DNA of 64,000 nt from Lytechinus pictus. Taxonomy: Eukaryota. The notes under the pieces are model-generated. The model saw only the letters and a list, made by a program, of their open reading frames with translations. It was not told the DNA's origin and made no database searches. Positions 413 to 64,000 of this stretch are shown here, one piece after another. The first letter of the stretch is position 1. Every line of letters begins with the position of its first letter. The stretch is taken from positions 13,950,001 through 14,014,000 of the forward strand of contig NC_087246.1 of NCBI RefSeq assembly GCF_037042905.1, written 5' to 3'. Made by a program: the position numbers and the translations under genes.

Positions 413-3400
413 TATATGAGTCCACTAGAATGATTGGTATAATTTTTTGTAAATCTCTCTTTAGCTTTAGAGCTAGTACAGGTTATCTGGCGATGCTCTC
501 AGCTCCACACCAACTTATTATTTTTTTTTAAATCAGACAGACAGTGAAAAGCAACACAGCATTATTATTTTTTTTTTTTTTTAAACCCAAAATCTAATAC
601 CACATAATATCATTGATAAATAAGGGGTAAGAATAATGAATCCACTTTTACCCCAATGCAATTTCCTGATATGGAGAACCACCTCTTCAAAGTTGGGTTG
701 CTTTAGGTTCAAAGTCTCGGGATAGAGGTCACCATATGTTCGCAGGGTTAGTTCAAAATTGTGACGTATTGTGATGGGAGCCCAACTTTGAAGAGGTGGC
801 ACTCCGTACAGGGAAATCGGATTGGATTCATTTTGATTATCCTGTTTCATGTTGTGTTATATTTTGGGTTATATTTTCCTTCAAGTCCTTTTTCAACTGC
901 TGCTATAGTATTAGTGATAATGAACAAAAGCCAACAGATGTGTAAAATAAATAATAAAAATAGTCAAAATCTCTTGACTTCTCCTGACTTGACAACATCA
1001 CGATCACATTGTAAATTGAATCAGGACCACATTCAGATCCAATGGTCTACATACATGTACATGGTTGGGTCCTACTTCCTTGCCCTATGTAGGTACATAC
1101 ATGTATACGTGTAGTCAATTAACCATGGTCATTGTTCATAGGGCCTTCATGAACATATTCAATCTGGATTACAGCCTTGGCTGCTTAAACCATTAATTGA
1201 TGTCATCTTTTATTATTTCAACATATAGGCCTACAGTATACATGCAGATTCATGTTTTACGTTTAGTTAAACAAAAGCCTAATTCATTGCCATTTTACAT
1301 TACTGCTAAAGTGGTTTGGAAAAGGAAGTTGCGTGGAAAAACCTTTGGTATCCATAGAAGCAATATGTTTACATTTTGGCTTATCTCTGTAAATATTATA
1401 TAATGTACCTCATGGCTAATGATAAGGTCAGATTTAGTGATATCCTGAAATTTGTTGTAATACCTTGTTTTGGTTATCAAGGAATTGATGTAATAATTTG
1501 TTAAAATTTAATAATCCAAACTACATGTTATAACATTTTCAGGTGAGTATTTACCTATTATAACAGTCCTTGTTATTACTGTGAAGTTTTAGTAATAGGT
1601 CAGTAGGTCTAGACGTGTTGGCATTTTTCAGCTGTAAGAATGTAAATTTGGCATAAAATATTGAGCATTGTATAAAATTTTAGAATTTTTTATGCTTTAT
1701 ATTGGTATTGATTCCTTCAAAGTGCGAAGTTATGAACATGGGGAGAACATCCAAGCTTTGAACGTGATTAGCTTGAAACCTTGTTTGGGAGACCAGTTGA
1801 AGTGTAGGACTGTTCTTTAATCACTCACAATATTACAATGTATGAGGATATGATCCTTAATTGATTTCTCTCTTGGTCATGTTCCATTACCATTTCTTGG
1901 GATTTTTTTCAGTACGTATAAAGATTTTATGTTGGTACTAAATAATAGAAAATACGATACAGGTCACCAATGATACAAGTGCTTCTGGACTTTGCTTCAG
2001 ATAACATCCTTTTTCCGGTTTATCAACCTCAGTTTTCATTCCATATCCTGTCAAGTTCCGGTCACATAATAGCAGATGAGAACCCATCTACCGCTATTCC
2101 TTTTATGACGATGTGGTTTTCATTGTGCAAATTTGCTTATCATGACCCCACCAACAAATTATTTGTTGTTGAAAATGATGGGAATTTTTTTAATGAAAAG
2201 GATCCAGTGTCTTTGGTTATGATCATTGGCTTGTTGGCATCCTTCGTAGGATGTCTGTAAAATATTTCTTATGATAAATGTGTTGTGATAGTTTTACGGA
2301 GAAATGATGTCATTATTTACCTCAGGAAATTTTTAAAAATCACGAAAATGCCGCCCATAAGATTTTTCATTCAGAATAAAGCATTTTATTAAAAAAGAAA
2401 AAAAAAATGTTTCACAAGTCAACAAATTTATTAAAAAATCAGCTCTCTATACCAAAATGGGTGGGTGAGAAGTTATTACAATGAAAATCACAAAAATTCA
2501 GTGTCCTTGCCTTTTCCTAAATCCTCAGTCACATTTCACATTTTCACTCCCACTATACCACCATCAGTATGGCGAATAATGTATTGATCCCATTTTCTAT
2601 CAGATTTTTTTTCATACTTTAATTTTGCAAAACTTTTTATAACGTTGACTTCTGAACTTCCTAACCAACAAGGATGTCAATCAGATTGTAATTGTGTCAT
2701 TGTTATAAATCATTTGATGATTTTGTGCATGATACCTGTAGACTAGAAACTGCATGTTATCCTGAGAACAATAGAGGAGGACATACAGTTTTTCATGGAA
2801 TCACATTTTGTTGTACTTTAGGTCATTAACATTTGTTTCATATTCTTCAAAAAATTACCAAATAACGGATAATGACCCTTGGGTAAAAAGAAAAAGTTTT
2901 CCTGCTTTCATTTTTTTTTTATACTCTTCTACTTTAATGTATGTCATTATGAATGTTCACAAGGAAAATGGGGATTAAAACTTCAAAATCATTGAAATGA
3001 TGTTACATAAAGGCCTTTGAAAGTTAATATTCATATCGAATCCATTGCATAGCACGAATGTCAATTTTATGTCGATGGTAGAACAAAAATATCAATGCAT
3101 CAAGATTAAGATCAATAATTGCTGCTAATTTGAAGAATACTGTAACTTGTCAACAAAGATCAATGCCTTTTCTGAAGAAAATGAGGGGAAACCCTATTTG
3201 TCAAATGATTAATCAGTTATATTAATTATATTGCATAAAAATATAGTTGATTGTAGGATACACATGTTGTTGACCCATACAGTTCATTCTGTAAACAAAT
3301 GTGTCAGAGAAATAGTAAGTCAAAGTTTCAACATACACAGAGGACTGTAAACATAAGTACCAGATATTGGTTATTGACATTACACAGAAATTATTCGCTA

Positions 3401-3718
3401 TGATGCACGTGATGCAAAGCTACCAACTAGAGTGGCCAATTGTAAATAAACTGTGAGATAATATATAGTAAGCAAGCCTTTACAGGATGTCTGAAATTGA
3501 TTTGCCTTGTAATAAACAATATATTTGCTGTTAGCTTCTCAGAAGGTTATTGACTGAATAATTTTTTATAGGTAGATGCACCGACAGTATTTTGTGTTTC
3601 ATCTTATTTTTCTTTCTTGCTGCTCTCTTTATTTTGTTCTTCCTTGTGAAAATTTCTGTCCTTTTCTCTATCTTTCCCACTTTCATTTTCTTTGTTTCTG
3701 TCTTTATTTGTTTCTCAT

Positions 3719-3886
3719 NNNNNNNNNNNNNNNNNNNNNNNNNNNNNNNNNNNNNNNNNNNNNNNNNNNNNNNNNNNNNNNNNNNNNNNNNNNNNNNNNN
3801 NNNNNNNNNNNNNNNNNNNNNNNNNNNNNNNNNNNNNNNNNNNNNNNNNNNNNNNNNNNNNNNNNNNNNNNNNNNNNNNNNNNNNN
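3719..3886. other. Assembly gap (168 N)
   Basis: Run of N following a T/C-rich low-complexity tract. Confidence 1.
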
Positions 3887-5610
3887 TGCAATGATGCCTT
3901 TTCAAATGTTTTAATGCACTAGAACTTTACATTTAGGCCCTGTTTGTCCTGTTAGGACAGTATACTGGGCATAAAGGTGGCACATTTTGACCTATGTTAC
4001 TACCATATATGTCTGACCACGGATTAGTGGTTAGGAAGTTACTTGTGTACATGTATGTTCAGATAATCTCACTGAATAGTGCCTTTATGATGGTTATGGA
4101 CTTTAAACCCAACTAAAATATTTCTTCCTTTCATTTCTTTGTAATACGCTGGATCTGTGACTTCACTGCACGCTACTTTATGTCATGGGTTATTTTGGGA
4201 TATGCTGTCTGCACACGTCTGAACAAAGAGCACCAGACTAATAGAGTGAAGAAAAAATATAGAACTTGATAAAATTGCAGTTACTACATTGTTTGTTAGT
4301 CATGAACATGATTTGAAAAAGAAAAAAAAAAATTACACAGAAGTTTGTAAAGTCTCACTTAGGGACATATGCCTATATGTGTCACTTTTCAATTATATTA
4401 TTTAAAAAGCCTGTACAAAGGCTTGGGATCTTTTGATTGATATATATTTTGTTTTAAAATGTAATTCTCAAACATGTGACAGGATAAATGGGGATACAAT
4501 CTAAATCCTTCTGATTAAGTTTTGACTTTTGATGTATTCAAACTTCAAATGGCCTTTAGAGTTAGACACAGTTCAATTTTGACCAAGTCATGGAGCTATG
4601 AGCTATATATCTGATCAACAGAAAATTAAAAAATAAAGAACCAGTTAATGAAATGTGATTTGTAAGATACGAATGTGAGAATTCAATTCACATTATTACA
4701 GAAGCTTTATGAGGATTTTAATAGCTTTAAAGCACATTGTTATGTTATGAGGCTGAATTGACTATAGAACTGCTCCATCTTCATTTTCTTAATGTACAAT
4801 GAAAAGATTGACTTCGACTGTCAACCCAATACTTTTTTAGTAACGAGCATCATTACTAGATTCAGAACGTCATGAGAATTTGTAAAGCAAATGTCATCAG
4901 AATAAACACTAATTTTTTTTAGAATTTTGCCCAAATTGATTCATATCACCATTGTTTTCTCATTGGTCAGTTAAAATTAGTATCTTCATCATTCTCTTCT
5001 GCTAGAGGGACGTTAATTCAATGTAAACATATGAAAATACTACCTTTCTTGCTCTAGACTGTTGATACTGTCTCCTAATACAGTGAGTCAGAGGTTAGGA
5101 CGTGCAGACTTCTCTGACCCCAAGCTCAGCGTGAAACTAGGGAAGCAGTCCCGCCCAGCTTGTTTGGTTTCACATTCTATGCAGTCATTCACACTGGGCT
5201 GTAATTGAACTTAAAACGATTTTAGTAGGTGGGTAATGCTGAACGGACATAAGTTTTTGTTGAAGCCATAAAATTACCTTCAGTATTTGAGTTTATATGG
5301 AAAACTCACACTGATGCGTGTGGTAATAAATTCACTTTTTGTAGGTGAAAACAAAATGATCAGCACTGTACTGTAGGTGCAATAATAGCAGCATTTCATA
5401 AAGAAAGTTGAATCTGTTTTGTAATATTTTGCACTGTCTTTGTGTATAATTTCATAAGGGGTTGGGGAGGGGATGGTGATGGGGATGGGGCAAGTGGAGC
5501 AGGATGTAAGAGGTACAATACACACACTAATACTTCCCTCCCTGTTCACGTCATGAATCTTGGGGTAAATAACCACACCCAGGTGACTTCATAGAGGTAC
5601 ATAAAATCCA

Positions 5611-5812
5611 AATGTCAACATACATCAATGAAGACTATGATAATAGTTGCATACACATTTTCATTATTCCTATTCAAGTAAAGTTTTCCTTCCAGAATAA
5701 CGTCACATACCTGTGCATGTATGATTTTTGTAAAGAATGTCAGCATACGTCAATGAAGCCGATGAATAAGTACCGGTAGTTGCTTTGGCTTTATCATTAT
5801 TTCTATTCAAGT
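5611..5812. repeat. Imperfect direct duplication (about 70 bp; 5611-5679 and 5736-5812)
   Basis: AATGTCAxCATACxTCAATGAAG...TAGTTGC...TCATTATTxCTATTCAAGT occurs twice. Confidence 0.85.
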
Positions 5813-7690: not shown

Positions 7691-8125
7691 GAGGCCGTTC
7701 TCATTACGCTTTCTAAAACTAGTTTACTGGAAACCGATTCAGGAAACCAGTTTGGAAGATCGCTCTGTTAGCGTCCCACTTGATCACACGAAAGTGGTTT
7801 TCAAAATCACTTCACTTAAAGCGATCTTGTTGCTATGGAAACACTCTCAGTGGGTGACACGGTTCGCGCGAAATTTGAAACCGCAGCCTAGGCTTTCTAC
7901 ACCCGGCGTGTGGAGTAGCGTGCTCAAAATGTGTGAAGATCATTTCCCGAAGAATGGTTGTTTCCTCACTTATGCTAATACCAGTTTAACGAGGCAAAGC
8001 GATCTTGAAAATTACTTTGCGAGGTGGTTTTCTGAACCGGTTTGGAAGATCGCTTCAACCGTTCTTACTACACGTTAAACTAGTTTCCAGTAAACCAGTT
8101 TTAGGAAGGTAGTGAGAACGGTGTC
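7691..8125. mobile_element. MITE with about 45-bp imperfect TIRs
   Basis: GAGGCCGTTCTCATTACGCTTTCTAAAACTAGTTTACTGGAAAC ... GTTTCCAGTAAACCAGTTTTAGGAAGGTAGTGAGAACGGTGTC; internal repeats (GTTTGGAAGATCGCT twice); TSD unclear. Confidence 0.8.
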
Positions 8126-9984: not shown

Positions 9985-12900
9985 GTAAGTTACAAATAAT
10001 ACCCATAGAGAAAATAATAGGTGTGGTGCATGTGCAATGATCGATTTGAAGAAATGAAACTTAACAATGCCTGTTATGAAACTGTATGTGATGTGATCAA
10101 GGCTCCTTTGCATAAAAGTTACTATAATCATGATAATAGTAACTTTGTCATCAAATGGTGTCTTCCATAGTATCCTTGTACTTGATTGGCTATTGAGCAT
10201 CGTTGCCATTGTAGTTATATCATGGCAAAGTAACCATAATATTAACTTTTATGCAATGGGCCCAGAGCCTATTCAGATTGTCGTCAATTGTCGTGATAAC
10301 AGACCCTTCCAACAGAAACTAGGGAATTCGTCAACTTCTAGTACATCATTTATTATTTTTCATTAATTGAGACCAGCATATTACATCCTAAGCATGACGT
10401 TCTACCATCATTGATGGCTACAAACCAGAATGATGGGTACATAAAAATTAGAGTTTCAGTGTGATTCCAACCAAAGGTTAGATAAACAATGATTTTTCAA
10501 TTTGGGAAATTGACTTACACCTATGATTCATATTTGATCTGATGTGATGTGAATGAGTAGTGACATGAATTGCATATATACACAGCAAAGATGACTATGC
10601 TAGGCTATTATGTACATGTATAGTTTGCATTTTGCAGACACAAAACTCTTTGTTTGCTGGAAAATGTGTTTTAAAGGTATGGACTTGGCTTAAATGTGAT
10701 TGTGCTCTATTTTTTTGTTCAGGGAATCTGGAGGGTGGTGTCTGGATATATTTTTTGTCTGACCATTTAACTTAACTATTTTTGCTATAATACAATTGTA
10801 AAATTATTGTTCAGGGGAATAAAACAATGTAAAATGCTTTACATTGAAATTGAGTAATGGTCCTAAAAATCAGTTAAATCATGGACCTGTTACAAGAGTG
10901 GACAGGATCTTATTATTAAAAGAAAAACAAATCAGCAAATTATGAGGGTTCTCAACGATGGTGAACCCTATCTATTGAGTGCAACAGGTGGTTGATTTCC
11001 CTGAAATGATGGATCACATCAGCACACCTTTTCCTCTTATAGTATAATTTAATTGATGATTAAGGTTGGTTGATTGTCCTTCAGACGGCTCAATCTCTTT
11101 GACCCTTTTTCAGGACAAGGAAACTTCAGCAAGTTAGCAGTGCTATTACATGTATTCACCACATGGTTATAAACTTGGAAGGTTGAGTGTGTTCAAATTA
11201 ATGGAAGACATATTGGCATTTGTGTTCCATCCACTAAAAACAGTGACTGCATTAATAGTACATCACATAATTATTAGTGAGATTTTAGATTAAAAGAAGT
11301 GATCATAGTGTGGCAGAATTCAAGTCAGCTATTGTCTTTCATAGCTGCCCAAATTTTGAGTGGGTTACTATAATGTGAACAATTATTTTACTGATTAAAA
11401 TACTTTTATGGACCTTTTTGTACTGTTGTACATCACAAACTTTTTTTTTCCAAGTTAATAATACTGAATATACTCCCTTTTTACAACAAATTTGTTTTAG
11501 TGTGAATACCATCATTGCACACACTTCCATTCCCTATCAGTAATACAAAGCCAGAATAGCTCTATAGCTGATGAAAGGGTTTGGTGATTTGGTAGTGATA
11601 TTTTACCTGATTGCAAAGAAAGCATGAATGCTTTGCAATTTTGCATAGTACATAATGCAGAGTCTGAAGTAATGAGATCTGATTCACTATTCACTTTACT
11701 CTAGACCTGTTATTGGTTAAAGTGTCAAATATAAGTCTGTGCTTGCAGACGAAGGACCAACGGCTTTGGATCCTTTCCGAGGGACCTGGTGATGAGGATT
11801 TAAATGCCTTACCATAGGGCACCAGCGCACCAAGTGGGAATCAACCCCGGTAACTTGAATGCAAAACCCCCACTCCTTTGAAACTTTTATAGCATTGATT
11901 CTTCTCGTAGCCAGCTACTGTATAATTTGAAAGCCGCTCCATATCAGACATTCCCTACCTGAAAAAGCTAATGTAAATTCTTAATTCTGTGTAGAAGCTT
12001 CAATTGTGGCATTTATTTTACTATGAAAAAGTTGCCACATTCAACCAAAGGTAATAGGATTGGGAAGGAATATGTTATCTGACAGGCAGTTTCCACAATA
12101 GCTTGCCTCTGTATAACCTTGTTGTGATTATTAAGAAATTATTTATATATCCGGAATTGACTTAGTTTACGCCAGCTGTTATATGGGAGGGGGATGATCG
12201 GGTCCATTGAGGTCAATTGATAGATAAATTAGCACAACTCATATTTCCCCTTCCCAATAGCTGAACAATTGATTATGTTTCAAAGAAGCAGGGGCCAAGA
12301 AATCTCAATGTGGTTATGACTAACCTAAACCTGTCCAGCTGTTATCGTCTTCATTTGAGTGGGCCTGTATATGAAATGAAAGCTTCAAGAAGTTATTAGG
12401 GACAGTATCGAGTGTGATGAATCGCTTTGTTTTTCCATTGGATTCCAGCTTCAGAGAATTATTTTATCTCAAGTTGTACTTATACTTTCTTTTATGCCGA
12501 TTGGATAAAAAAACTCTATCATTGTGTCAGATTGAACTTGTCACCTGTATGCAGTTGTTGTTTTTTTTAGTTAAAGATTTGGAAAGGATGAATACTTCAT
12601 TTATGTATTGATAAGTGACTGAAATCTTACAGGAACATTTCACATTGGTTTGACTTCGCCCCTCTACTCCCCTTCACTTGTACATGGAATCTAAACAAGG
12701 ATTTGTTTTAAAGTATGCTTGTGATTGAAAAAAAAGTAATTTGATCTTTGGAAACATTTCATGGTCATCATTCATGGATCTTACATGGATTTATGCAATA
12801 TTTCTTGTTCAGTGGTTATAGTCCATTGAAGGAAACAATTTTTGATCCTGGTTTTATTGGACAAAATCTTGTTTCATTGAAAGGATTCGTGTGACAGTAG

Positions 12901-14322: not shown

Positions 14323-14354
<32 letters not shown>

Positions 14355-47300: not shown

Positions 47301-47548
47301 TATATTTCTAGGAAACGATGTTTGAAAATATAATAAACAATAAATACATTAGGCACGAATATACCTGAAATATACTTTAATCCCAACTGCATCCCAATCA
47401 TGTGAAAGAGCTTAATACACTTTTTCATTTGATACCCAATTCGTCATGGTAGTATTTATATTTCTGAAGATATAGTAAATTTTACAATGTTTGGCAAGTG
47501 AACAAATTTCACTGAATTCCATGGGTGTATGCAAACTTTTGGCCTCAA

Positions 47549-47586
<38 letters not shown>

Positions 47587-53500: not shown

Positions 53501-56500
53501 GTTTATTTTTAAACAAAAATAGGACAATAAGTCAAAGTCCTCTTTTATTTATACACTCCCTCGATGTGGACAAAGCAGTGCAAGTGAAATTTTTTGAGCT
53601 GAATAATGAGTTGAATAACTGTCCAAAAGGACATGTATATTAAAACTTGTTACATTTGATTATGTTGTATTTTTAATTTTTGTACTTCCCATAATTTTCT
53701 GGATTTTTTTTTCATTTCATGAAGATGGCCTGGATTTCCTGGAATTCAGGAAATTTCATTCTAAAGTGGAAACACTCGTAAAAGAGGGTTTTTTTTAGAT
53801 ATATCAAAGATATTACTGGACGTTTGAAGAAAGTGTTACTTTATGATTTCACTCAAACTGAGGCAAAGATATATTTTGCATCACAAGAATGTTTTTTGAA
53901 TCGTTATATTTTAATTTTCATTCACATACATGTGTTATCTTTTATTTCTTGATTTGTTTCTTCCTAGATGACGAGCTGCTTACGGGCATGCTGCATGTAA
54001 TAGTGAAAGAAGCTAGAGGGTTAACAGTCCCCTCCCGTAAGTAAACACATTGTATTCGAACCTCAAATTATCTTACATTAATTGAGGTCAATAAACTTTA
54101 CTTTACTTGTAGGACTAAACCTATTCATCGATCAAAGTAGAGATGTCCTTTGCTGCTCTCCTTCAGATAAAATTATACTGTCAAGTCTATTCTTAAATGC
54201 ATTCACTGAACAAGTAGTAACTACATCTTCTAGGAGACTGTTCCACACATTTATCACTCGGTTAGCAAAGAAAAACTTACACACATCAAGACGTGAATAT
54301 TTTTTTCTAGCTTTAAGGAATGACCACGTGTTTTACCACTATTTCTCAGACAGAAAAGCTCAGAACTTGTATCATAGTATACCATGCAGATATTGTACAC
54401 ATTAATCATGTCACCTCTATTTCGTCTGTGACTGAGTGGCATTAATTTCAGGTGGCGAAACATCCAGTGTATGAAAGGTGCTTAATACCTGGGATCAATT
54501 AATATGGTAAAGATTATCAAATATGTTATCTGTTATTGTGTATTGTGGGAAATTGTGCATTTGTATAATTCATGAGCAATAACAATGCTTGCCTTTCTAA
54601 GTACTGTCTGTACTACTAGAGATATTGAAAAATTAGCTACTGTACGATTGATAATCATGATTTTCAAAGCTGCAGTGACCAAATACAGATTTTAAACTTA
54701 ACATTACTGTCCCATCAGAATTAATTCAACACACAAAGAATATCAAATCATTGTCATGGCAGGAATGAACATCCATATAACTTCACCATGCGATTCCATG
54801 AGCCGTTGATTGTATATCTGATTTTTACAATTGATTCCAAAATTAAGGACCAAGACCCTGTTGCATAAAGTTACCATTATGGTAACTTTGCCATCCATTG
54901 GTGGCTTGTATGGAACCCTTGATTTTGATTGGCTGTTGATCATCAGCGTACCCTGGTAGTTACCATTGGATGGTAAAGTTACTATAAAAGTAACTCTTAT
55001 GCAACAGGGCCCTGATCTTTGAACAATGGTTGCCAAAAGATGGCAGCAAACAGAATAGACAAATACTGTCACGTTTTTTTTTCAGAGTTGTATTGCTGTC
55101 TGGAGACTGATGCATACGGAATCTTCTCTCGTATGGCAAAAACTAGGAAGACATCAAATACAATCAAACCAAAGTGGAATGAGGTAAGTATTAATTTGTC
55201 GGTTTGCTTATTTAAAATCAACTCTTTTCCCACATGAATGCGTTAACACAAATGTATAATCATATGAAAAATGTATCACTCAAAAGAAAAATTTTATTCC
55301 AACTTATTAATATAATAATTTCCTTATTACTGAAATGTTATTTATCCAGGGCACTAAGTTATTCTAATGTCGACTCTGTTCTCTTGACCAAAGGCCATGT
55401 TATAGTTTTTGTTTGTAATTGCTTGTTGGGCTCACCCTACAAATGTGACTGTATCTGGTGTGCGCTAGATCATTTTTTTTTCATAAACACCCTCAAAGAG
55501 GTGTAAATGAACCACTGAGGCATGCAAATAAGCATACAGTAATAAACAGCCCCATTTTCACTACCACACTTATAAAGCGCCTGCACCGTACATGAACAAA
55601 TATCTGGGGTAATGTGAATGGGGTCATAGTTTAATAGCCTTCTTGATGATTGATTATGGTTGTCCCCTCACTCAGTTTCACTTTCATAAATCTATTTTCA
55701 TTAATGTCCAAAATATTGAATATTAGAGGGAAGTAGGCCCTTTAAAATCATAATAAAAGTTTCAATTTCGACCTTATACTTAAGTGCTTTGCTTTATAGC
55801 ATTCTAATTGTGTAGTATCTGATGTTTCTATTCAAAGTTTAATTGAAGTATCTCATATTACATTAAAAGTGCACGTCACAAATCTAGCTAAGGGGTTCAC
55901 GTAACAACCTTTTTTTAAATTACAATTTTCCTTTGTCTTCCATATGTCATAGAGCTATGCAATACATATTATGGTGTGATGATAATCATAACCACATTTT
56001 AATCATTAAAAATGCATATTAATTCCTACTTCAATTGATTGTAATTAGTTCAGTTTTTCAGTTCTTGAATAACAAAATATGAAAATAAAATGCATCAAAT
56101 GACTTCAAATTCCACTTTATTTCTAGATTGAAACATTTTGCGTATCATCATGACCATTATGTGTTATTAAAAAGGTATCAATTTAGGCAACCAAAGTTTC
56201 TGACTTCCATTTCATTGACATTTAAATCATTTGTGATTCATGTATGATAAATGTTGATAAAAACTGGCTTTAAAATCTTCATTGAATTCTTATGATGGCA
56301 ATAGGAGTTTGCTCTTGACGTGGATGGAGCGAAGACGCTGAGGATCCTATGCTATGATTTCACCAAGGGTCTGGATGATGAGATGTATGACAAGGGTGCT
56401 GTCAGTCTTGCAAAGCAGGATATCAGTGTTACAGGAGGCAAGGATTTCACCATTCTCATGGACCAGGTAAGTCATGTGGTATGACAGCGATATCATCGGG

Positions 56501-59500
56501 TTCATAGAATAGGAGATTTAGGGTTGCTCTCCACCCAGGTGTAGTAAATGAATACTCGGTAGAAAGGAATTCTGATAGTGCCTAGGCAGCCCAGCTAAAG
56601 CCGGTGTAATAATGTTATCATTAAGCAGGGCCCATTGGGAGAACATTTTTCAGAACTACAGTAAAGTGGCTATATACCATGGGTAAATATGACATTATTA
56701 TCGTTTCTGTTGTTCTGTTATTATTATCAGAGAGTGGTATAAGTGGCAAAGACTTAATGGAACAGGTGCATATAAGAGAGGTTTCATACCACTGTTTATG
56801 AAGAGATGTTGAAAATGTATATGTATGTGAAGGATGGTAATAATTTGTACTGTCTTCCCATGGTATAAAGCTGAGTGAAATAGTACATGTGTAGTCTAAA
56901 TAGTAGTTAGTGCAGATATACCAGATACATGGTGTTGCATAGGGGTAACATATTTCACTGATTGACACCAATTGGTCCAGAAAGACAGAATTGTACCTTT
57001 TGTACCACCAGTATTTATATTTAGTAAGACATACACAAAGAAAATCAAGTGTCATTTAATTGATTTTAGGCCTATTTCCCTAAAGACTCTTTATATTGAT
57101 GATACGAAAGATGTTCAATAGGCATGACACTACCACTATATCAATGCTACTGTTGACTTCAACAATGGTTATCTGCCTATTATGTGATTTTAATCCATGA
57201 ACCTGGACAATGAGGATTAGCACATCAATCACCCACTGGCCTGGATTGATTAAGCCCTCATCCTCTTGTCTTTGTCAGATGATAATTGAATAGAACTGTC
57301 CCCAGGATTTTATTGATTATCTCTGATCCTATATAGAGCGTTTTTGTGTGATGTTATTGTTTAGGGTTTATATCCATGTTCAGTGAGGTGGTCAAGAGCA
57401 TTTTGAAGTCTCTGGGAACTGTGTGTTTTAACTCAAGTTTCTCAGGTAACATTACCTGTCTTGTCTTGGGTACAGTAGGCATCTGCAAGCTTGCAAGCTC
57501 CACACGTCCATCTTCATTGTGGTTAAATGTCATATTCTCTACCAGAAGAAGTATGCATCTACTTGTACTCTGGGTTTTAATTAGCTCTTTATAAAAAAAG
57601 TTCATCCTCACTCCTTTTGAAGAAGATTGTTTGCAGTGTTGGTAGCCAGGATTACATCTGGATCTTTGGACTCACATCCTTGGTTAAATTGTCCTCTCTT
57701 TGGTTACTTTCCAAAACCAAGGTTGCCTCTACAAGCGAACTTTGAGCAGGATACCACTCCTGCACATACAGGATACTTAGAGTCATTTGGATCACTTTTG
57801 ATAGTTATTTTCTATAAACAGTATATGTGTTTGCAGCTATTTGGTATAAACACATACCTCATCAGAACTTCCTTCCACAGACATTTTGTGCTGTCTTAAA
57901 TTTGGCCCATCCGTGATGGACCACTTGGGAGATCTGTCCACTTAGCGAACAGGAGGATTGTTATGATCATACGGATTGCTTTTTAATACTTCCTTGATAT
58001 ATCACCTGTTTTGATACATATATAAACATATATGCATTAAGATATCCTTCCGCTCAGATATACACTGGCATCATTGACTCAGCATTTGCCATGGCCTGTT
58101 AACAGACTCCATCTTCATTGCGGGACTGTATGCCAGATTTGTTAACTTTACCAGTTGAAGAATCTTTGTCATTTCAATCATCTTTGCTACCTGTTGATGA
58201 ATGGTATAGCATGCGTATAGATGGACTGAAAGAAAAATGCTCATCCTTCAGAAGTTAACCGTCATCAGATGTACACTGTCCTTGTGAGTCTCTTATTTGC
58301 TTCGTCAACAGAGGATATCAAGAATCAGGTTGCCATTTGCATCATTTGACAAATAATTTCTTTTCACATACTGAAAGACAAAGGATTTCATAAAGATGTG
58401 GAGATTTTGTCTTGTGGTATATGCCTACGCAAGGAACAATCTGTTTGGGTGTTTTGGGATACCTTCAATAAAACTCAAAACGAAAGATGATGTGGTGAGT
58501 ATCGTGACCAGGGATTCCTCAAAGGTCACCATCGCCCCCCCCTTCCACTCCCTCTCCATCTTTCCCTGCAAATTCACATGTATTTATGATTTATATTTAT
58601 GTATGAGGTGTGCGTACGCAGATGATATTGATATATCCAGCACATGTACAATTGATTTGTCATTGTCTGGTTCCTAAGGACAGACATTATCACATTGAAT
58701 TGCTTCAGCTATTCAATCAAAACCAAGCTCAAGGCTGGACCAAAATATATGTTACATGTAAGTGTTTGGAATGAAGCAGTAATATTTTTTTTTCTTTCTT
58801 TCCTTTTCATTCCATGGTTGGTACATGTATGTAGTCACTTTTTGTTCTGAATGGGGCATGTACCGATATATATTTTGTGCACAAATATATTTGTATAGTA
58901 GTCATCCTAAATGCATTTTTATATTTTCTAAATATCCATTCACAGCTCCAAGTTGATGTGACAGTACGCTTCGAGTCATCTGAAAAGACTCTAAAGAGAG
59001 TTCATTCAAGGAAGAAGATGGGAGTCTTTGGGGTACAGGTTGGAACCTTGGCTCATCGGCAGGGCAAGAATATCCCCAACATTATCACACTTTGCGTGGA
59101 AGAGGTCGATAGGAGAGGTATGTCCACTTTTCATTTTCTCCTAGGCCTGTTGTAAATAAATTTTGCAATTGACGGCAACTATACTTTCAATGACAATTAC
59201 CTTAGTGACATATCAAACCAATGAAAACCAAGGTTTTCCTGCAGTGGCACAGGTACAGTCATATAATCTTTATGTAACATTGACCTGGTGATGTTGAGAT
59301 TTTGGGCGACAGTTTGGAAAGTTTAACTTATTCATTTTAGGTATCTCTGTGATACAAACAGTTGTATTTACCATGGCCAAATGGCAGGGAAAAAAATATC
59401 AAAATATAAAAATCTAGAAAAAGGTGTGAAACAACATTTTAATAGTTGATTGACAAGTACACCCATTTGTGATATTCTCTAACTCTGAAGTGAAATTTCT

Positions 59501-59998
59501 GCAGAATAGTTTGAAATTATTAGACTTTGACTTCACATTAATATCTTTGGAGCTCATCAAAGAAGTATAGCACATGTACATTCAGAAGTATTCTGAACAT
59601 TCCATGAGTGCGGGAGTCGGTAGCTTGATATGATGGCTTAATTCTCTTGGTTTTCATCATTGTGAACCTTAAGGTTTATTGATTTCAACTCGCTTCATAT
59701 GTCTTGGTTGTACTTTCCCATAGCTTTGCTGGTTTATTACACCAGCTGTAAAATTTCTAGTGTTAATTCCATCTTTACCTGGTACATTTCACCTGCTACA
59801 TGTAAGAATTCCTTGTTAATTCCTATATTTGATTGAGTGAAGCTTACATTAAGAGATTCCGATGGTTAATTGATGAAACCGCCACATAACTTTCCATTCT
59901 ATTTTTCATCACTTTTGTAGGTATCCACGAAATGGGAATTTACAGGATATCAGGATCATCAGCTGACATTCAGAAATTGAAGAAAGCCTTTGAAATAA
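9162..59998 (+). CDS. BCR/ABR: BCR/ABR-family RhoGEF(DH)-PH-C2-RhoGAP protein, 19 exons, 3'-incomplete: join(9162..9984,13085..13254,14613..14732,20003..20188,24124..24274,28723..28775,37459..37584,40494..40609,41400..41491,42958..43055,44539..44598,48694..48756,49281..49418,50255..50300,53968..54036,55086..55183,56305..56466,58946..59117,59921..59998)
   Basis: All introns are GT-AG, phases match at every junction, no internal stops. Motifs are colinear with human BCR/ABR as recalled: GILESEQKY, FFRIPEL, DLLKHTP, GRKLRRVLL, QWYIPLTELS, SSDYERSDW, TLRILCY, GVFGV, CVEEVDRRG, GIYRISG. The first exon is less certain than the rest. Confidence 0.93.
11745..11872 (-). mobile_element. Degenerate tRNA-derived SINE fragment (second family)
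   Basis: Minus strand reads GGGTTGATTCCC (box-B-like) followed by GTGCCCTATGGTAAGGCATTTA, typical of SINE heads. Confidence 0.45.
13085..13254 (+). CDS. BCR/ABR: Exon: Ser/Pro/Asp-rich linker (GALSSDSVSLSPSVDS...SATTPSR)
   Basis: Pyrimidine tract + CCAG acceptor; AGG|GTAAGT donor; phase 1 to 0. Confidence 0.85.
14325..14352. repeat. (AG)n microsatellite plus G-run
   Basis: Direct reading. Confidence 0.9.
14613..14732 (+). CDS. BCR/ABR: Exon: start of DH domain (GDSIKLSTPEVEKLSIRRLLLGGILESEQKYIKSLEILQK)
   Basis: CAG acceptor, AAG|GTAGGT donor; DH CR1-type ILxSExxY motif. Confidence 0.95.
17230..18288 (+). mobile_element. 5'-truncated L2/CR1-group non-LTR retrotransposon (RT from the YADD motif to the C-terminus, 3' UTR, TAT tail)
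   Basis: IRSHGVDVMLYADDTQMY, LNDEKTE, RNLGVIFD, LVHAFVTSRIDSCNSLL, LHWL, RSFAVAGPTLWNKLP, FKSLLKTHLF; stop at 18096; 3' stem AGCGCATA/TATGCGCT; (TAT)n tail. Confidence 0.95.
18378..18506. mobile_element. Short Harbinger-like MITE, CTG TSD
   Basis: CTG|GGTCCCGTAACACAAAGGTTAG ... CTAAGCTTTGTATTACGGGCCC|CTG. Confidence 0.8.
20003..20188 (+). CDS. BCR/ABR: Exon: DH domain (VMKTFKASISTSTPVM...FFRIPELLNVHRQF...GDSFKLL)
   Basis: TAG acceptor, GTAAAG donor, 62 codons; resembles BCR IFFKVPELYEIH...GDLFQKL. Confidence 0.95.
21745..22060. repeat. CT-rich polypyrimidine low-complexity tract
   Basis: Direct reading. Confidence 0.85.
22483..22655. repeat. Degenerate (CAT/CAC)n trinucleotide repeat
   Basis: Direct reading. 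Confidence 0.9.
24124..24274 (+). CDS. BCR/ABR: Exon: DH domain (ASHFDIHEEYIANYKRAM...EMYTLE)
   Basis: CAG acceptor, G|GTAGGT donor, phase 0 to 1; YxxNY motif. Confidence 0.93.
27583..27962. mobile_element. PIF/Harbinger-type MITE, TTA TSD
   Basis: TTA|TACCCCTTTCATAAACC ... GGTTTATGAAAGGGGTA|TTA: perfect 17-bp TIR with a 3-bp TWA duplication. Confidence 0.88.
28723..28775 (+). CDS. BCR/ABR: Exon: DH CR3 region (AMLYSPLQGITKLTMILN)
   Basis: TTTTCAG acceptor, GTAAGT donor, 53 nt, phase 1 to 0; aligns with BCR LLYKPVDRVTRSTLVLH. Confidence 0.9.
28909..29190 (+). mobile_element. Full-length tRNA-derived SINE
   Basis: Box A TGGCCCAGTGG, box B GGTTCGAATCC, body ACCCAGGTGAGGTGAATGGG, 3' GCGCC...GGCGCTATATAA and (TAT)n tail; possible ATAATTT TSD. 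Confidence 0.92.
29363..30210. mobile_element. Non-autonomous element with a long terminal palindrome at one end and a short direct repeat at the other (Crypton-like)
   Basis: About 180-bp hairpin at 29363-29545 centred near 29450; GAGGGATATAA-like motif repeated at 30193; CpG-rich interior; no TIR pair or clear TSD. Family assignment is inference. Confidence 0.55.
30845..31012. repeat. Degenerate (CAT/CAC)n repeat
   Basis: Direct reading. Confidence 0.9.
37133..37388 (-). mobile_element. SINE, same family as 28909-29190, inverted and more diverged
   Basis: The reverse complement shares CTTCAGCAAGAAATTTATCCACA, ACCCAGGTGAGGTGAATGGG, GGATTAATTCCTTGAATG and CTAAAGCCxGGGTAATAATA. Confidence 0.9.
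37459..37584 (+). CDS. BCR/ABR: Exon: end of DH domain (DLLKHTPEHHEDHSILSQVLEKTRKFFKQVDDATREIHSTKQ)
   Basis: TAG acceptor, CAG|GTATGA donor; DLLKHTPxxHxDH motif. Confidence 0.95.
39452..39622. mobile_element. Harbinger-like MITE with CWG flanks
   Basis: CAG|GGTGGTGTTTCATAAAGCTGTTCGTAA ... TTACGGACAGCTTTATGAAACGGGCCC|CTG. Confidence 0.78.
40494..40609 (+). CDS. BCR/ABR: Exon: start of PH domain (KRELVRQGYLVEWTEGGRKLRRVLLWSDLIICASKRNT)
   Basis: Strong acceptor, AG|GTACTT donor, phase 0 to 2. Confidence 0.95.
41400..41491 (+). CDS. BCR/ABR: Exon: PH domain (SGMFQRDKGQYDFQWYIPLTELSLTPNDRCE)
   Basis: TTTCAG acceptor, G|GTTGGT donor, phase 2 to 1; WYIPL motif. Confidence 0.93.
41580..41722. repeat. 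Degenerate fold-back palindrome (old MITE)
   Basis: GTGTTGATGCAAGAACACCCTTA... is mirrored by ...TAAGGGCATCCTTGCACTGACAC over about 60 bp with mismatches. Confidence 0.6.
42958..43055 (+). CDS. BCR/ABR: Exon: PH helical insert (AEPDVVAKSDFELRQMKKDISELQEKIKRDKAA)
   Basis: TTTAG acceptor, GTAAGT donor, phase 1 to 0. Confidence 0.92.
43244..44105. mobile_element. Non-autonomous TA-targeting DNA transposon (Tc1/mariner/pogo superfamily-like) with GGGG...CCCC termini
   Basis: TA|GGGGAAGGCAGGGTAAGTTG ... CAACTTACCCCGTCTTCCCC|TA; about 8 copies of GGG(C/T)AAGTTG(A/T)GCCA-like motifs in both orientations. Confidence 0.85.
44539..44598 (+). CDS. BCR/ABR: Exon: PH insert (KQSRAILKSIDQKRKQMGEL)
   Basis: TTTCAG acceptor, GTAAGA donor, 20 codons. 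Confidence 0.88.
46935..47551. mobile_element. Non-autonomous Tc1-like element
   Basis: TA|CAGTTGAGGCCAGAAGTTTACATACACCCATGAAATTCA ... TGAATTCCATGGGTGTATGCAAACTTTTGGCCTCAACTG|TA; right flank expands into (TA)n. Confidence 0.9.
47552..47581. repeat. (TA)15 microsatellite
   Basis: Direct reading; starts at the TA TSD of the Tc1-like element. Confidence 0.95.
47861..48135. mobile_element. Harbinger-like MITE, CAG TSD
   Basis: CAG|GGCCCTGTCTTACAAAGAGTTACGATTGATCC ... GGATCAATCGCAACTCTTTGTTAAGACGGAGCC|CAG. Confidence 0.85.
48322..48414 (-). mobile_element. 3' tail fragment of a SINE/LINE
   Basis: Minus strand reads AGCCAGGGTAATAATA...AAGCGTATAG...TATGCGCTATACAAGT...TTATTATT. Confidence 0.6.
48694..48756 (+). 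CDS. BCR/ABR: Exon: PH domain (EVGYVLESPKLPFHLYHHSGK)
   Basis: TTTTTGCAG acceptor, AAG|GTAAAT donor; resembles BCR SPSMAFRVHSRNGK. Confidence 0.93.
49281..49418 (+). CDS. BCR/ABR: Exon: end of PH domain (TYTILMSSDYERSDWKEAI...PKTRR)
   Basis: CAG acceptor, GTAAGA donor; SSDYERxxW motif. Confidence 0.95.
50255..50300 (+). CDS. BCR/ABR: Exon: PH-C2 linker (GRDSYVNISSVLLKD)
   Basis: Long pyrimidine tract + TCAG, GTGAGT donor; this 46-nt exon provides the required phase 0 to 1 bridge. Confidence 0.85.
50323..50452. mobile_element. Degenerate short MITE related to 18378-18506
   Basis: CTG|GGTCCTGTATTATAAAGCTTAAGGATTGATT ... AATCGATTGCTAAAGTGTATGTTACAGGTCC|CAG; nearly identical length. Confidence 0.65.
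53968..54036 (+). CDS. BCR/ABR: Exon: start of C2 domain (NDELLTGMLHVIVKEARGLTVPS)
   Basis: CCTAG acceptor, GTAAGT donor, phase 1 to 1; resembles BCR [21 protein letters not shown]. Confidence 0.93.
54095..54500 (-). mobile_element. CR1-type LINE 3' fragment, frameshifted
   Basis: Minus strand encodes RRNRGDMINVY, KTRGHSLKL, then after a frameshift FFANRVINVWNSL and AFKNRLD; (GTAAA)n tail near 54095-54110. Confidence 0.88.
54854..55011. mobile_element. Palindromic Harbinger-like MITE
   Basis: GACCCTGTTGCATAAAGTTACCATTATGGTAACTTTGCCATCCATTGGT ... ACCATTGGATGGTAAAGTTACTATAAAAGTAACTCTTATGCAACAGGGCC|CTG. Confidence 0.8.
55086..55183 (+). CDS. BCR/ABR: Exon: C2 domain (QLYCCLETDAYGIFSRMAKTRKTSNTIKPKWNE)
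   Basis: T-run + CAG acceptor, GAG|GTAAGT donor; LYCxLExDxxG and AKTR...PxWNE motifs. Confidence 0.95.
56305..56466 (+). CDS. BCR/ABR: Exon: C2 domain (EFALDVDGAKTLRILCYD...FTILMDQ)
   Basis: TAG acceptor (weak pyrimidine tract), CAG|GTAAGT donor; TLRILCY motif. Confidence 0.93.
56521..56615 (+). mobile_element. SINE body fragment
   Basis: CTCTCCACCCAGGTGTAGTAAATG...GGCAGCCCAGCTAAAGCCGGTGTAATAAT resembles 29020-29120. Confidence 0.6.
58946..59117 (+). CDS. BCR/ABR: Exon: end of C2 / start of RhoGAP (LQVDVTVRF...GVFGVQV...IPNIITLCVEEVDRRG)
   Basis: CAG acceptor, G|GTATGT donor; GVFG and CVEEVxRRG motifs. Confidence 0.96.
59921..59998 (+). CDS. BCR/ABR: Exon: RhoGAP arginine finger (GIHEMGIYRISGSSADIQKLKKAFEI)
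   Basis: TTTTGTAG acceptor, GTAAGT donor; GIYRxSG catalytic motif intact. Confidence 0.96.
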
Positions 59999-60599
59999 GT
60001 AAGTTAATTGGAGTCTTCAAAATGTTATTTCATATTTCATGAATATCTGCCAATCCATATTCATGTTATTACTCAATTATTAATCCATTTCTAATATGAA
60101 TATTATTCTTTTCATGCCTTAATTTATTGCAGGTCTCAAATATTTTTCTTTCTAGTTTACATGTAGGGCAAATTTGCAAGTATTTTTTTTTCTTTAAAAA
60201 GAAGGATTTAGATAGAAGTTACCAAAAAGAGTAAGCATGTAGTATTTCTAAAACTGCATAATACACTCATTCAATTCCACATATACAGTATCTGGGCATT
60301 TTAGAAGAAAAGTTCAGATGATATTTAAAGAGGTGCTTAATTTCCTTAGCAGATCACTGAAGAATAATCCTAAATGGATACTATGTTTTACAATATAAAT
60401 TCACATCACAGTACCCATTCTAGGCTGTAGTCCCACTTCATATATTTTCATGCCATATTTGCATCTCTAATGGTCCTATTATCTTTATATTTAATATCAG
60501 TGCTAGATATCAAGTAGTATCTTACATTTATTCACTAAATCTTTATTCTCGCTCAAAAGTCTCAATCTGTCTTCTTAATATGCTCTATAGTACTAGTAG

Positions 60600-61008
60600 A
60601 TATGTGACATCCCATCCCAAAACCAACAATAAGTTGCCGAAAAATGAAAATTTAGAATTTTATTTGAGCTTGAAATAGTAGATCCTTACCTTTAAAAGGA
60701 TATATGACTTTTCCAAACTTGATCAACGATAACCCACATAACTACTTGATTGAATGTAGTAGACATTAACGTTAGAGCTTCAGAAAATAAGGAGAAAACA
60801 AGGTTTGAAATTAAGGGTTCCCCAAGCATAAGATGTGCATGGTGTGCAATCTGTGTTAAACTTCCAAGCAGTCTACAAACAATAGTGTAAAAAATCTAAT
60901 TTTCTTCTTGACTTCGCAACTTCAAATAAGCTAATTTCTATTTTTGGCTATTTACAAAGAAATTTCCCTGGTGACCTGTTGTTGGTTTTGGGGTGGTTAA
61001 TCACATAT
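60600..61008. mobile_element. MITE with about 30-bp imperfect TIRs
   Basis: ATATGTGACATCCCATCCCAAAACCAACAA ... TTGTTGGTTTTGGGGTGGTTAATCACATAT. Confidence 0.7.
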
Positions 61009-62578
61009 GGATATGCAATTTTAAGACTTTTTATGCTCCATTGTATTGCAGAACAGCATAATTATTAAAGTATATCACATGAACACTTTCATCTCTTTTT
61101 TGCTTTAGAAGGTTCTGTCCCTTTTTAAGAAATAAAATACTTCTATGCCTTTTCAGATTTATAAAAAGTATGTGTCTAAACCTCATTATATAATGTGTAA
61201 TCCATATTTTTGCATCTATTAATCTTTTTGCCATATATTTATTAATCCCTTTTTAATGGATAAATGACAGCATTCCATGATCTGTGTGAAATTACCGAAT
61301 CTGGTATGTGTATTTCATTGCTGTGTAATCTTTTCAGAGCCAGAAATACATCATTTCTATGCACTCAATGGTGCTCCACTCCTTTATATGTCAAAACAAA
61401 AAACAAAAATATAATTGGAAATCTTTCTAGAAAAATGTAAGGAAACTTGTTAGTGATGCATGGTTTTGGATAACATTATTCCATATTTGAATGCAATAAA
61501 ATACATTTCAGAGTATTTGCTGTTAAATTTGAATTGCTTTATAGCAATCAGTAATATTATAGTTGTCCAAAATATTGTATTTTAGCTTTGAGACGGATTT
61601 CCGTAAATGATATCTGAATATCAAAGTGTAGGGGTACAATATTTGTTCAATTTACAGGAATGTGCAAAACATTGACAATCCCTTCAAGAAATGATGCAAA
61701 TTTCTGGTGTTGAGAAGACTTTGTTATTGCTTTTTGTGCATGTTGCATGCATGTTCCTTCTAGTTGTATGCATTCATTGTTTTCTATCCTACATTACGCA
61801 TGCAGGCCTGGCCAGTTTCCCCAATGGTATGTTATTTAATGCATTTTTTTTTAAATTGGTACTTCTATGCCTGCTGTATGCTACACATTATATGCATGCT
61901 GTATCAACATTACTTGTGGATATATCTTATTCTTCTGCTTCTGCTTCTACCAGCTTGAAAACTATGTGCAGCTATTGCTACATTGTAGAGCCCAACTAAT
62001 TGTTGATATTGTATCTAGGCAAGGTGACACAGTCAAGGGTTCCTATAGCTTGCTCTACTATACTCCACTCCCCATGGACCATGCTTTATAAACTCTGATT
62101 TGCAAAAGTGTGGAGAGTTACATTTTAATCAATAATTTTGATCATTATATCATGTCTTTTTTAATATGGCCTTTGTAAATCTGTGTATATGTATCCTGCA
62201 ATGTTTTTTTTCTTCTCCTATTTTTTATTACCTGAATGATTGCAGTTTAATCTTTATACATGTAATTCAGTGCCATTCTTATTCTTTTTTTAAATTTTAA
62301 TCTTATGTTTGACCAATATGAACATATCTCTTTCTTAAAAATAGAGTAAATGATAATATCCTTTTCAATAGTCATACTGCATATGACCAATTCTTAGTCA
62401 TATTCAGTATCTTTTGGTCTGTTTGGTGTTTTATTTTGGATGTGATATTTGTAAGTAAGTGTTTCTATTTAAAACATCTTTTTTTCTTTTATACCTTTCC
62501 TTATTAATTGATGTACTATTGCAACTACATATGTGTATGTACATGTATATATACATACATACTGTCTACAGCCTTTAA

Positions 62579-63182
62579 GGGGAATCCAACCCAAATAAAA
62601 ACTTGATTTTATAAGGAAAAGAACAATCAGACAAGTTGACCGGTGACAGTTTGAACAATATTGGACAAACAACAAGAAAGTTATGAATTTTTAAAAGTTG
62701 TAAATATTGGTAATCACTATACCCATGGAGACTTCAAATTGGCTGCATATGGGATGTCATAGTGATGTAAGGCAAGGACTACTCTTCCATGTACTCCAAT
62801 ACATATTATGGCTAAAATGTCATTTTTCCCAAAAGTTTTATTTCAAATTATATTTTTATTTCATGATGACATAAAACAATATACTAGCTACCTGGGTTAT
62901 ATTTAGATTACTGCCCCAGGGGAATGGGTACTTAGGAGAAAACCACAAATCCCTGATAATAAAGTACATGGCCTACATGTATGGGAAAGTTGTCCTTGCC
63001 CCTTGTCATAATTTACTTACCCAGTTGCCAATTTGAAATCTACATATTATTAGTGATCTCAATTTTAAAGCAGCTATAACTTTCTTATTGCCTGTCCGAT
63101 TTCATTCAAACTTTCACCATTCTATTTAATTTATTTTTCTCCTTCCCAACACAACATTTAATGGCCAAGGCTGGATTCCCCT
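62579..63182. mobile_element. Kolobok-like non-autonomous element, TTAA TSD
   Basis: TTAA|GGGGAATCCAACC ... GGCTGGATTCCCCT|TTAA; short TIR with purine-start termini (not the CCC start of piggyBac). Confidence 0.75.
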
Positions 63183-63228
63183 TTAAGGTCTTTAAAGTGG
63201 TTTTATCAATCATTTAGAATCAGGGGAT

Positions 63229-63545
63229 GGGGTTGTTTCATAAAGCTGTTTGTTTGTACATGCATTACAACTGAATGCAGGACTGGAACCTGTTCTTGTG
63301 TGTGAAATCAAGATTCTCAATCGCTTAATTTGATTGCTATCTGGTAAAACTGAAATCAGGTCTTTGTAGGTTAGAATTCTTGCTGTTAACAAACATCTGC
63401 AATCATTTATTTTATTTGTCAAAATTATGAGATATTAGGTCCCACTTTGTTAAAATGGGAAAAGTTTGGTATCTCATATTAAAACAGGTCACCAGTTGTG
63501 CATAAATTTGTGAGTAAATTACAAACGGCTTTATGAAACATCCTT
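63229..63545. mobile_element. MITE related to 39452-39622
   Basis: TGTTTCATAAAGCTGTTTG ... CAAACGGCTTTATGAAACA. Confidence 0.7.
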
Positions 63546-64000
63546 GGGAATTTTTTTTTGGTCTTTTCTTTTAGTTTTATTGCATCACATGCTTTAATTT
63601 TGCACATTTAAACATGTATGCTCACCCTATTGATATTCTTTTGTAAAACTAGTACAATCAACTTTGGCCTTTTAATGGTTATTCATGTATTGTGTACCCT
63701 CTCAAGCACACATGCTATCACATCACACTTAGAAGTATGACTTAATTTTAATGAATTTGCTTAGTACATTAGGAATATTGAATTTCAGCAATGGTTACAA
63801 TGTACATGTAGTTGCAGCAGTATACATGGTGAACCTTGTCTAGGGGCAGAAATTTTCTGACTCATAGAAAAAGAAGAGGTAAAAACCATGAAAACCATTT
63901 ACTGGCAAGCAAAAAAAAGGAGGGAACGTCATGGAAAGTCTGTCAGGAGGGGGTTAGTTCCCTTCACCCCCCCCCCCCATAATGCAAGTGGTTAGCAGTG

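Follow-up and report, generated by a model that had tools for sequence, protein, structure and literature searches.

Excision scars of Tc1/mariner transposons are textbook material at single loci, and the two-letter stagger with which the non-transferred strand is cut is known from the biochemistry of Tc3. In Drosophila, the Tc1-family element Minos marks its TA sites with a typical gain of 6 bp, which consists of four letters of one end plus a TA and is unlike the two-plus-two palindrome that concerns us here. We analyzed a stretch of 64,000 nucleotides of Lytechinus pictus (assembly GCF_037042905.1, contig NC_087246.1, positions 13,950,001 to 14,014,000 of the forward strand; hereafter, the window), in which the palindrome TACATGTA occurs 28 times in and around a BCR/ABR-like gene. 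We conclude that most copies of TACATGTA are very probably scars of Tc1-type cut-and-paste transposons, spread over the whole genome in about 190,000 intact copies.

A Tc1/mariner transposase makes its cut on the non-transferred strand a few letters into the element, and the resulting 3' overhangs are end-joined into footprints (PMC6943129). The described footprints are diverse. About three quarters of the somatic scars of Tc1 in Caenorhabditis elegans are +4, reading TATGTA or TACATA (PMC12632400), the footprint of Sleeping Beauty is TACAGTA or TACTGTA (PMC6943129), and ZB leaves 0-3 bp (PMC7913693). In rice, a comparison of Asian and African genomes revealed 94 mariner/Stowaway excisions, of which only 8 were clean, deletions or filler being present in most (PMC4423477). 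In the literature on the motif as a footprint and on mariner excision in sea urchins, we found no uniform scar at the level of a k-mer excess.

Abundance of the palindrome in the window and in the genome

A first-pass annotation of the window had listed 28 exact copies of TACATGTA. All of these coordinates are correct, there are no further copies in the window, and inspection of the flanks bore out its statement that the sites share no flanking homology. Its rough expectation of 2-3 copies under a mononucleotide model agrees with the order-0 Markov expectation (2.4), which rises to 3.2, 5.8, 14.4, and 22.9 at orders 3, 4, 5, and 6. Under a Poisson model, 28 or more copies have a probability of 3e-11 for order 4 and 9e-4 for order 5. 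At orders 5 and 6, the underlying 6- and 7-mers already contain most of TACATGTA, so that the signal is absorbed. The excess thus passes the high-order check that the annotation had proposed, holding at order 4 both in the window and in twenty random 10-kb pieces of the genome (200 kb, 39 copies versus 9.6 expected). Dinucleotide shuffles of the window gave a mean of 1.9 copies and a maximum of 6, and among all 8-mers of the window TACATGTA ranks third, behind two T-runs. Overall, TACATGTA is overrepresented five- to tenfold in the window. In the 200-kb sample, the commonest 8-mers (GTACAAGG, GCTAGTGT, and others) stem from a highly repeated unit.

The excess is a property of the full 8-mer. 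In the window, ACATGT is flanked by T and A 28 times and by each of the remaining 15 flank pairs 0-7 times. The one-letter neighbors of TACATGTA are enriched at most 2.4-fold (TGCATGTA), the others no more than 1.5-fold, and the spacing variants TACA-N1..6-TGTA are close to their expected counts. TGCATGTA itself (35 versus 14.4 expected in a 264-kb unbiased sample) could stem from scars that have decayed or from the TGCATG motif of introns.

Genome-wide, we counted 224,046 copies of TACATGTA in 811.7 Mb (368 contigs), where about 33,000 are expected (order 3, scaled from the 264 kb of unbiased sequence), an excess of about 190,000. As a null, we preferred the Markov expectations to the reversed word ATGTACAT (85,448 copies), which overlaps with tandem scars and with the palindrome TGTACA. 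The annotation had placed the excess across the gene body. However, the genome averages 17.7 copies per 64 kb, and the window is only mildly above this average (p ~0.014, overdispersion aside). Hence, the gene body is not special, and we rejected a gene-specific feature on the ground that the density of TACATGTA is genome-wide.

Derived six-letter insertions at bare TA sites

Two copies of TACATGTA lie inside MITEs (miniature inverted-repeat transposable elements), which the annotation had singled out as allowing the change to be polarized. The features concerned are as follows (here and below, features are unstranded unless a strand is given):
62575..63186: TTAA-flanked MITE, ~610 bp, inverted ends of ~115 bp, our clock and polarity reference
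62974..62981: TACATGTA, derived; other MITE copies read GGCC-TA-TGGG
62884..62889: TAGCTA at a TA of the MITE consensus (+4); four letters are missing there in other copies
47857..48137: 280-bp MITE
48016..48023: TACATGTA, within the 280-bp MITE

The proposal succeeded for the first of the two copies of TACATGTA and failed for the second, where the anchored pattern matched the window only. The ~610-bp MITE, with ends AGGGGAATCC...GGATTCCCCT, is present in well over 1,500 copies that differ by ~2% from their consensus. At 62974, the window reads GGCC-TACATGTA-TGGG and 28 of the 29 other sampled copies read GGCC-TA-TGGG; the remaining one (L024) has acquired TACAAGTGTA independently at this TA. 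The consensus is thus a bare TA, as the annotation's check asked, with a clean +CATGTA in the window copy only. Reads over 58300-63900, from three runs of a relative at ~5% divergence and from one run of the same organism or a closer one, also have the bare TA in paralogues at 62974 (among 12 of the 118 indel rows).

We then searched the genome for three segments of this MITE between exact anchors and read the matched strings by eye. The 40-nt segment had 1,456 copies of unchanged length and 81 longer ones, with TACATGTA at the TA of 62974 in the window copy only; the 36-nt segment had 1,536 unchanged copies and 35 with +4 to +14, and the 77-nt segment 1,178 and 42, respectively. Together, the three segments hold 20 TA sites, or 28,476 TA site-copies. 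Among these, a TA has become TACATGTA 14 times, at 7 different TA sites, and has become one of three similar palindromes in a further 10 cases (5 TAGGCCTA, 4 TACCGGTA, and 1 TACTAGTA). About 18 more are trimmed or extended TA...TA forms (TATGTA, TACGTA, TACATTGTA, TACAAATGTA, TACGGTA, TACCCGGTA, TACTATATAGTA, and others), and the remaining longer copies show tandem duplications, homopolymer changes, and filler. When exactly six letters were gained, 19 of 30 copies were perfect TA-xy-y'x'-TA palindromes and 3 of 30 were one letter off. An unbiased alignment of 30 MITE copies gave the same picture as the anchored searches. At each of the two TA sites hit most often, differing linked variants argue for three or more independent events. 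The TAGCTA at 62884 looks like a scar with one letter per end, of a G...C class.

The same clean +CATGTA was found in a satellite unit in L007, such that the derived state covers 62974, 13 further MITE events, and one satellite unit. The tandem repeat in question spans L007:7100-9200, with a unit of ~210 bp. Other observations on the MITE copies include a change from TA to TATA in 18 copies of one segment, one ~610-bp copy nested within a Tc1-like element (L027), and GGCC or GATC inserted at non-TA junctions (G000:C7:45798764, C7:47319698, C17:9095443, and C10:34259574).

These results bear on the possibility that TACATGTA accumulates by compositional or mutational bias, without any insertion, for example by decay of CpG to CA/TG or at junctions of TACA/TGTA microsatellites. 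Some copies are compatible with it. At L007:8997, TACATGTA is one substitution away from its paralogues (TATATGTA), which points to an origin by point change, and the window sites 62540, 1052, and 1098 lie in TACA/TGTA-rich stretches of low complexity. An origin by point change does occur, as a minority. Yet neither a Markov model of order 4 nor dinucleotide shuffling removes the excess, it is confined to the T...A-flanked form, one-letter neighbors are far less enriched than TACATGTA, and the polarized cases show six letters cleanly inserted. Of the 28 window sites, about 4 have TACA/TGTA-rich flanks, and the set does not belong with microsatellite or low-complexity products. We therefore regard this explanation as very unlikely, and return to excision scars.

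Target bias

The sites of insertion are not a random sample of TA dinucleotides. Compared with the flanks of all TA, positions -3, -2, and -1 are the only ones that deviate, toward A, C/T, and A/G (p = 0.007, 3e-6, and 2e-5), such that the flanks of TACATGTA read A-Y-R-TA-Y-R-T. TAGGCCTA and TACCGGTA share this bias, and the most-hit TA sites of the MITE follow the same rule. A preference for the palindromic target ATATATAT has been described for ZB, SB, and Bari (PMC7913693). The flank bias observed here matches the palindromic preference of Tc1-like elements.

Sister palindromes

Two of the palindromes that arose in the MITE copies are also abundant in the genome. When all 256 TAnnnnTA words were compared in the 264-kb unbiased sample, only TACATGTA (67 observed versus 10.9 expected), TAGGCCTA (16 versus 1.2), and TACCGGTA (8 versus 0.95) were enriched, low-complexity words aside. 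The genome contains 66,473 copies of TAGGCCTA and 20,388 of TACCGGTA. We also considered +5 scars of the Sleeping Beauty type and rejected them, TACAGTA/TACTGTA being unenriched (16.5 versus 14.6 expected in 200 kb). The sister palindromes of the window are as follows:
1226..1233, also 39759 and 57067: TAGGCCTA, sister palindrome
5771..5778, also 6767, 29729, 29963, and 52843: TACCGGTA, sister palindrome

Sister families of elements with ends GG...CC, CC...GG, and CT...AG would leave TAGGCCTA, TACCGGTA, and TACTAGTA, respectively.

Candidate source elements and proposed mechanism

The annotation had pointed to a resident element with CA...TG ends, and such an element is indeed present:
46933..47553: Tc1-like non-autonomous element (MITE), 617 bp, TA-CAGTTGAGGCCAGAAGTTTACA...TG-TA, candidate source type of the CA/TG scars

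It reads TA-CAGTTGAGG...CCTCAACTG-TA, with terminal letters TA-CAGT...ACTG-TA. Its terminal repeat has 813 matches in the genome with up to two mismatches, at least 100 of them exact. This repeat (CAGTTGA...GAAGTTTACATACAC) resembles that of Sleeping Beauty. A second family, beginning CAGTGC and also with TA-CA...TG-TA ends, was found in L010 and L027. For the class ending in CA/TG, the added letters hence match the last two letters at each end of a resident TA-flanked element.

The genome also encodes candidate transposases. At least 150 matches to DDE_3 exceed the Pfam cut-off (729 candidates), none of them with an internal stop, and they are mostly open frames of ~364 codons with mostly identical scores. 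This uniformity suggests a young autonomous family. The DDE_3 matches often occur in inverted pairs 1.3-1.7 kb apart, both open (in G000, for example, C9:712162-714088, C4:487726-489835, and C5:7793050-7795124), which may be a hairpin-forming arrangement.

How could such elements produce TACATGTA? An element with CA...TG ends would insert at a TA and duplicate it. At excision, the non-transferred strand would be cut two letters inside each end, such that each flank would keep the TA plus two letters of the element, TACA on one side and TGTA on the other. These overhangs would be unable to pair, and the host would join both of them untrimmed, turning a bare TA into TACATGTA with a net gain of 6 bp. 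We infer the two-letter stagger and the overhang-keeping end joining from the product. The annotation had proposed repeated insertion and excision, and its reading gains strong support from the derived +6 state, the recurrence, the flank bias, and the resident elements. Several features expected of an excision footprint were found: a TA on both sides of the added letters, a bare TA in the ancestral state of the polarized cases, a palindromic flank preference, and encoded transposase matches.

A TA-specific 6-bp insertion could also come from something other than Tc1/mariner excision, either another superfamily or a repair process that adds palindromes at TA-directed breaks. In its favor, three of the four palindrome classes have no source element among those found, and the few GATC and GGCC palindromes in the MITE copies lie at non-TA junctions. 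However, the duplication of TA together with two letters that match the ends of a resident element is the signature of Tc1/mariner, the flank bias is of the Tc1 type, Tc1-like transposase matches in open frames exist in the genome, and the inserted letters are independent of the flanks. We consider such a process unlikely. Snap-back or templated repair was rejected, since the insert is independent of the flanks.

Rate of formation of the probable scars

If the new events are scars of excision, their number can be compared with the stock of scars in the genome. The 14 scars among 28,476 TA site-copies amount to 4.9e-4 per TA, over a mean MITE divergence of 2.25%, i.e., ~0.022 scars per TA per substitution per site. 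Taking the decay of an 8-mer as ~8x the single-site rate and 65.6 million TA sites in the genome, the balance between scar formation and mutational decay predicts ~179,000 intact scars, to be compared with the observed excess of ~190,000. These figures should be interpreted with caution, since they are rough and based on 14 events and the assumption of a constant rate. The new MITE events of TACATGTA, TAGGCCTA, and TACCGGTA are in the ratio 14:5:4 and the genome excesses are ~190k, 63k, and 17k. The 14:5 ratio of TACATGTA to TAGGCCTA thus parallels the genomic ~190k:63k, and at equilibrium the class that contains a CpG is rarer, in line with expectation.

Sites of the window and the host gene

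The host gene was mapped by means of a sea urchin homologue. This homologue, found via one exon, is annotated in Diadema antillarum as active breakpoint cluster region-related protein, and exon identity is 82-92%. As stated in the annotation, no copy of TACATGTA lies in a coding exon, the 16 mapped exons being the ones covered here. The gene, the assembly gap, and the copies of TACATGTA other than those at 48016 and 62974 are as follows:
14610..59994, + strand: BCR/ABR-like host gene, 16 exons mapped, RhoGEF-PH-C2-RhoGAP, no TACATGTA inside them
3719..3886: assembly gap (N), overlapping no TACATGTA; the nearest are at 1098 and 4048
1052..1059: TACATGTA, flanks rich in TACA/CATG
1098..1105: TACATGTA, with TACGTGTA directly after it, at 1106
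4048..4055: TACATGTA, 162 bp to the right of the N gap
10613..10620: TACATGTA, exact match
11147..11154: TACATGTA, exact match
14536..14543: TACATGTA, intronic, with a mapped exon 67 bp further on
14738..14745: TACATGTA, intronic, starting at +6 of the splice donor AAG/GTAGGT, the site closest to any mapped exon
27322..27329: TACATGTA, intronic
32226..32233: TACATGTA, intronic
34420..34427: TACATGTA, intronic
35953..35960: TACATGTA, intronic
39955..39962: TACATGTA, intronic
40171..40178: TACATGTA, intronic
41306..41313: TACATGTA, intronic
42513..42520: TACATGTA, intronic
48532..48539: TACATGTA, intronic
50514..50521: TACATGTA, intronic
51005..51012: TACATGTA, intronic
52204..52211: TACATGTA, intronic
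58753..58760: TACATGTA, intronic; the relative's contig over 58735-59196 is shorter by 6, a hint only
58822..58829: TACATGTA, intronic; same contig and same hint as for 58753
59797..59804: TACATGTA, intronic; the relative's contigs over 59719-59911 are shorter by 7-8, a hint only
60158..60165: TACATGTA, intronic
62257..62264: TACATGTA, exact match
62540..62547: TACATGTA, in a (TG/TA/TACA)-rich low-complexity stretch, of ambiguous origin
63803..63810: TACATGTA, whose first TA is shared with TACAATGTA (63796), a non-canonical form

The gap overlaps no site and can therefore only hide further copies of TACATGTA. The shorter contigs of the relative (-6 letters over 58735-59196, -7 to -8 over 59719-59911) fit the model without showing the absence of a scar, and a search of the assembly for an alternative haplotig of 58300-60500 returned the window itself as the sole match. 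Over 59115-59919, a contig of run X10 joins both ends with GT..AG, matching the intron between two mapped RhoGAP exons; this run probably holds RNA. Judging from the expected background, some 22-25 of the 28 window sites should be scars.

Some scars are adjacent or overlap with a common TA (TACAATGTACATGTA, TACATGTATACGTGTA, TACATGTACATGTA), as at 63796-63810 and 1098-1113 of the window and at G000:C1:59157-59170, 70562-70575, and 207577-207590, with ~3 such cases per 100 sites on C1. They seem commoner than random re-hits would be, as if the TA of a scar were a favored target or the 6-bp unit slipped. At 14732-14745, the scar at donor position +6 keeps the consensus T, and insertions adjoining splice sites are evidently tolerated.

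The position of these sites invites another explanation, namely that TACATGTA is a functional motif, bound by a protein or an RNA-binding factor and maintained by selection in introns. It is palindromic, it is missing from exons, and one copy (14738) abuts a splice donor. A functional motif is expected to predate and outlast neutral sequence and to be constrained in position, whereas the new insertions are at arbitrary TA sites of young MITE copies and of a satellite. Moreover, random pieces of the genome have a similar density, three unrelated sister palindromes behave alike, and a neutral balance of rate and decay explains the abundance. A functional motif is thus extremely unlikely, and we infer that the 27 other window sites have the same origin as 62974, by excision of Tc1-type elements.

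Discussion

Several observations weigh against this origin, in addition to the point change at L007:8997, the low-complexity sites, and the roughness of the rate figures. Of the 28 window sites, 62974 is the one that could be polarized and the other 27 rest on statistics; the one related copy of the 280-bp MITE among the sampled sequences is 80% identical and fails to align at 48016. Several of the MITE events occurred at one common TA site and might be inherited, although at least three hits per most-hit TA appear to be independent because the linked variants differ. No source element was found for the classes GG/CC, CC/GG, and CT/AG; a scan for TA-flanked inverted repeats by terminal dinucleotide was too noisy for such assignments. 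Finally, Tc1 in the worm leaves mostly +4 and Sleeping Beauty +5, such that a dominant +6 needs a host repair habit deduced from its product.

If most copies of TACATGTA are scars, what do they say about this lineage? With a little better than an even chance, it has combined intense turnover of Tc1/mariner elements with uniform germline repair, leaving ~270,000 intact canonical scars of at least three classes. These would have added ~1.6 Mb and would account for most 6-bp insertions, and they would be two to three orders of magnitude more numerous than the standing copies of one counted candidate source family (~400 elements). Of the two halves of cut-and-paste transposition, excision usually goes unseen, since what a genome ordinarily preserves is the insertions that were never lost. 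In L. pictus, departures can be counted as well, and one assembly suffices for this. Excision could then be timed quantitatively by its scars, its rate being estimated per TA per unit of divergence (~0.02 here). The scars would further offer a natural view of a mode of end joining in which both non-complementary 2-nt 3' overhangs survive. The type of scar allows families to be compared, and the targeting of introns versus exons, and selection, could be measured.

There are also practical consequences. The spectrum of small indels would be partly transposon-made, as suggested by about two thirds to three quarters of the +6 events in one neutral repeat family. Population or phylogenetic work based on indels in this group should expect parallel, recurrent 6-bp insertions at the same TA, and work on motif discovery should mask these palindromes.

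The germline repair outcome proposed here, in which both overhangs are kept, would differ from that of worm, fish, mammal, and rice. Like Tc1 and Tc3 of C. elegans, the elements of L. pictus would target TA, have CA...TG ends, and keep their terminal letters between two TAs, and the worm form TATGTA occurs in L. pictus too, as a minority. Unlike in the worm, the +6 form with both overhangs dominates, in ~2x10^5 copies. Sleeping Beauty is similar in its TA target, its 3' overhangs and end joining (PMC6943129), and its preference for AT-palindromic targets (PMC7913693), but its cut is of three letters and leaves +5, and its forms are unenriched here. The mariner/Stowaway elements of rice are alike in providing a genome-scale record of the excisions of DNA transposons. 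In contrast to rice, a single uniform scar dominates in L. pictus, and it is visible as a k-mer excess without a second genome.

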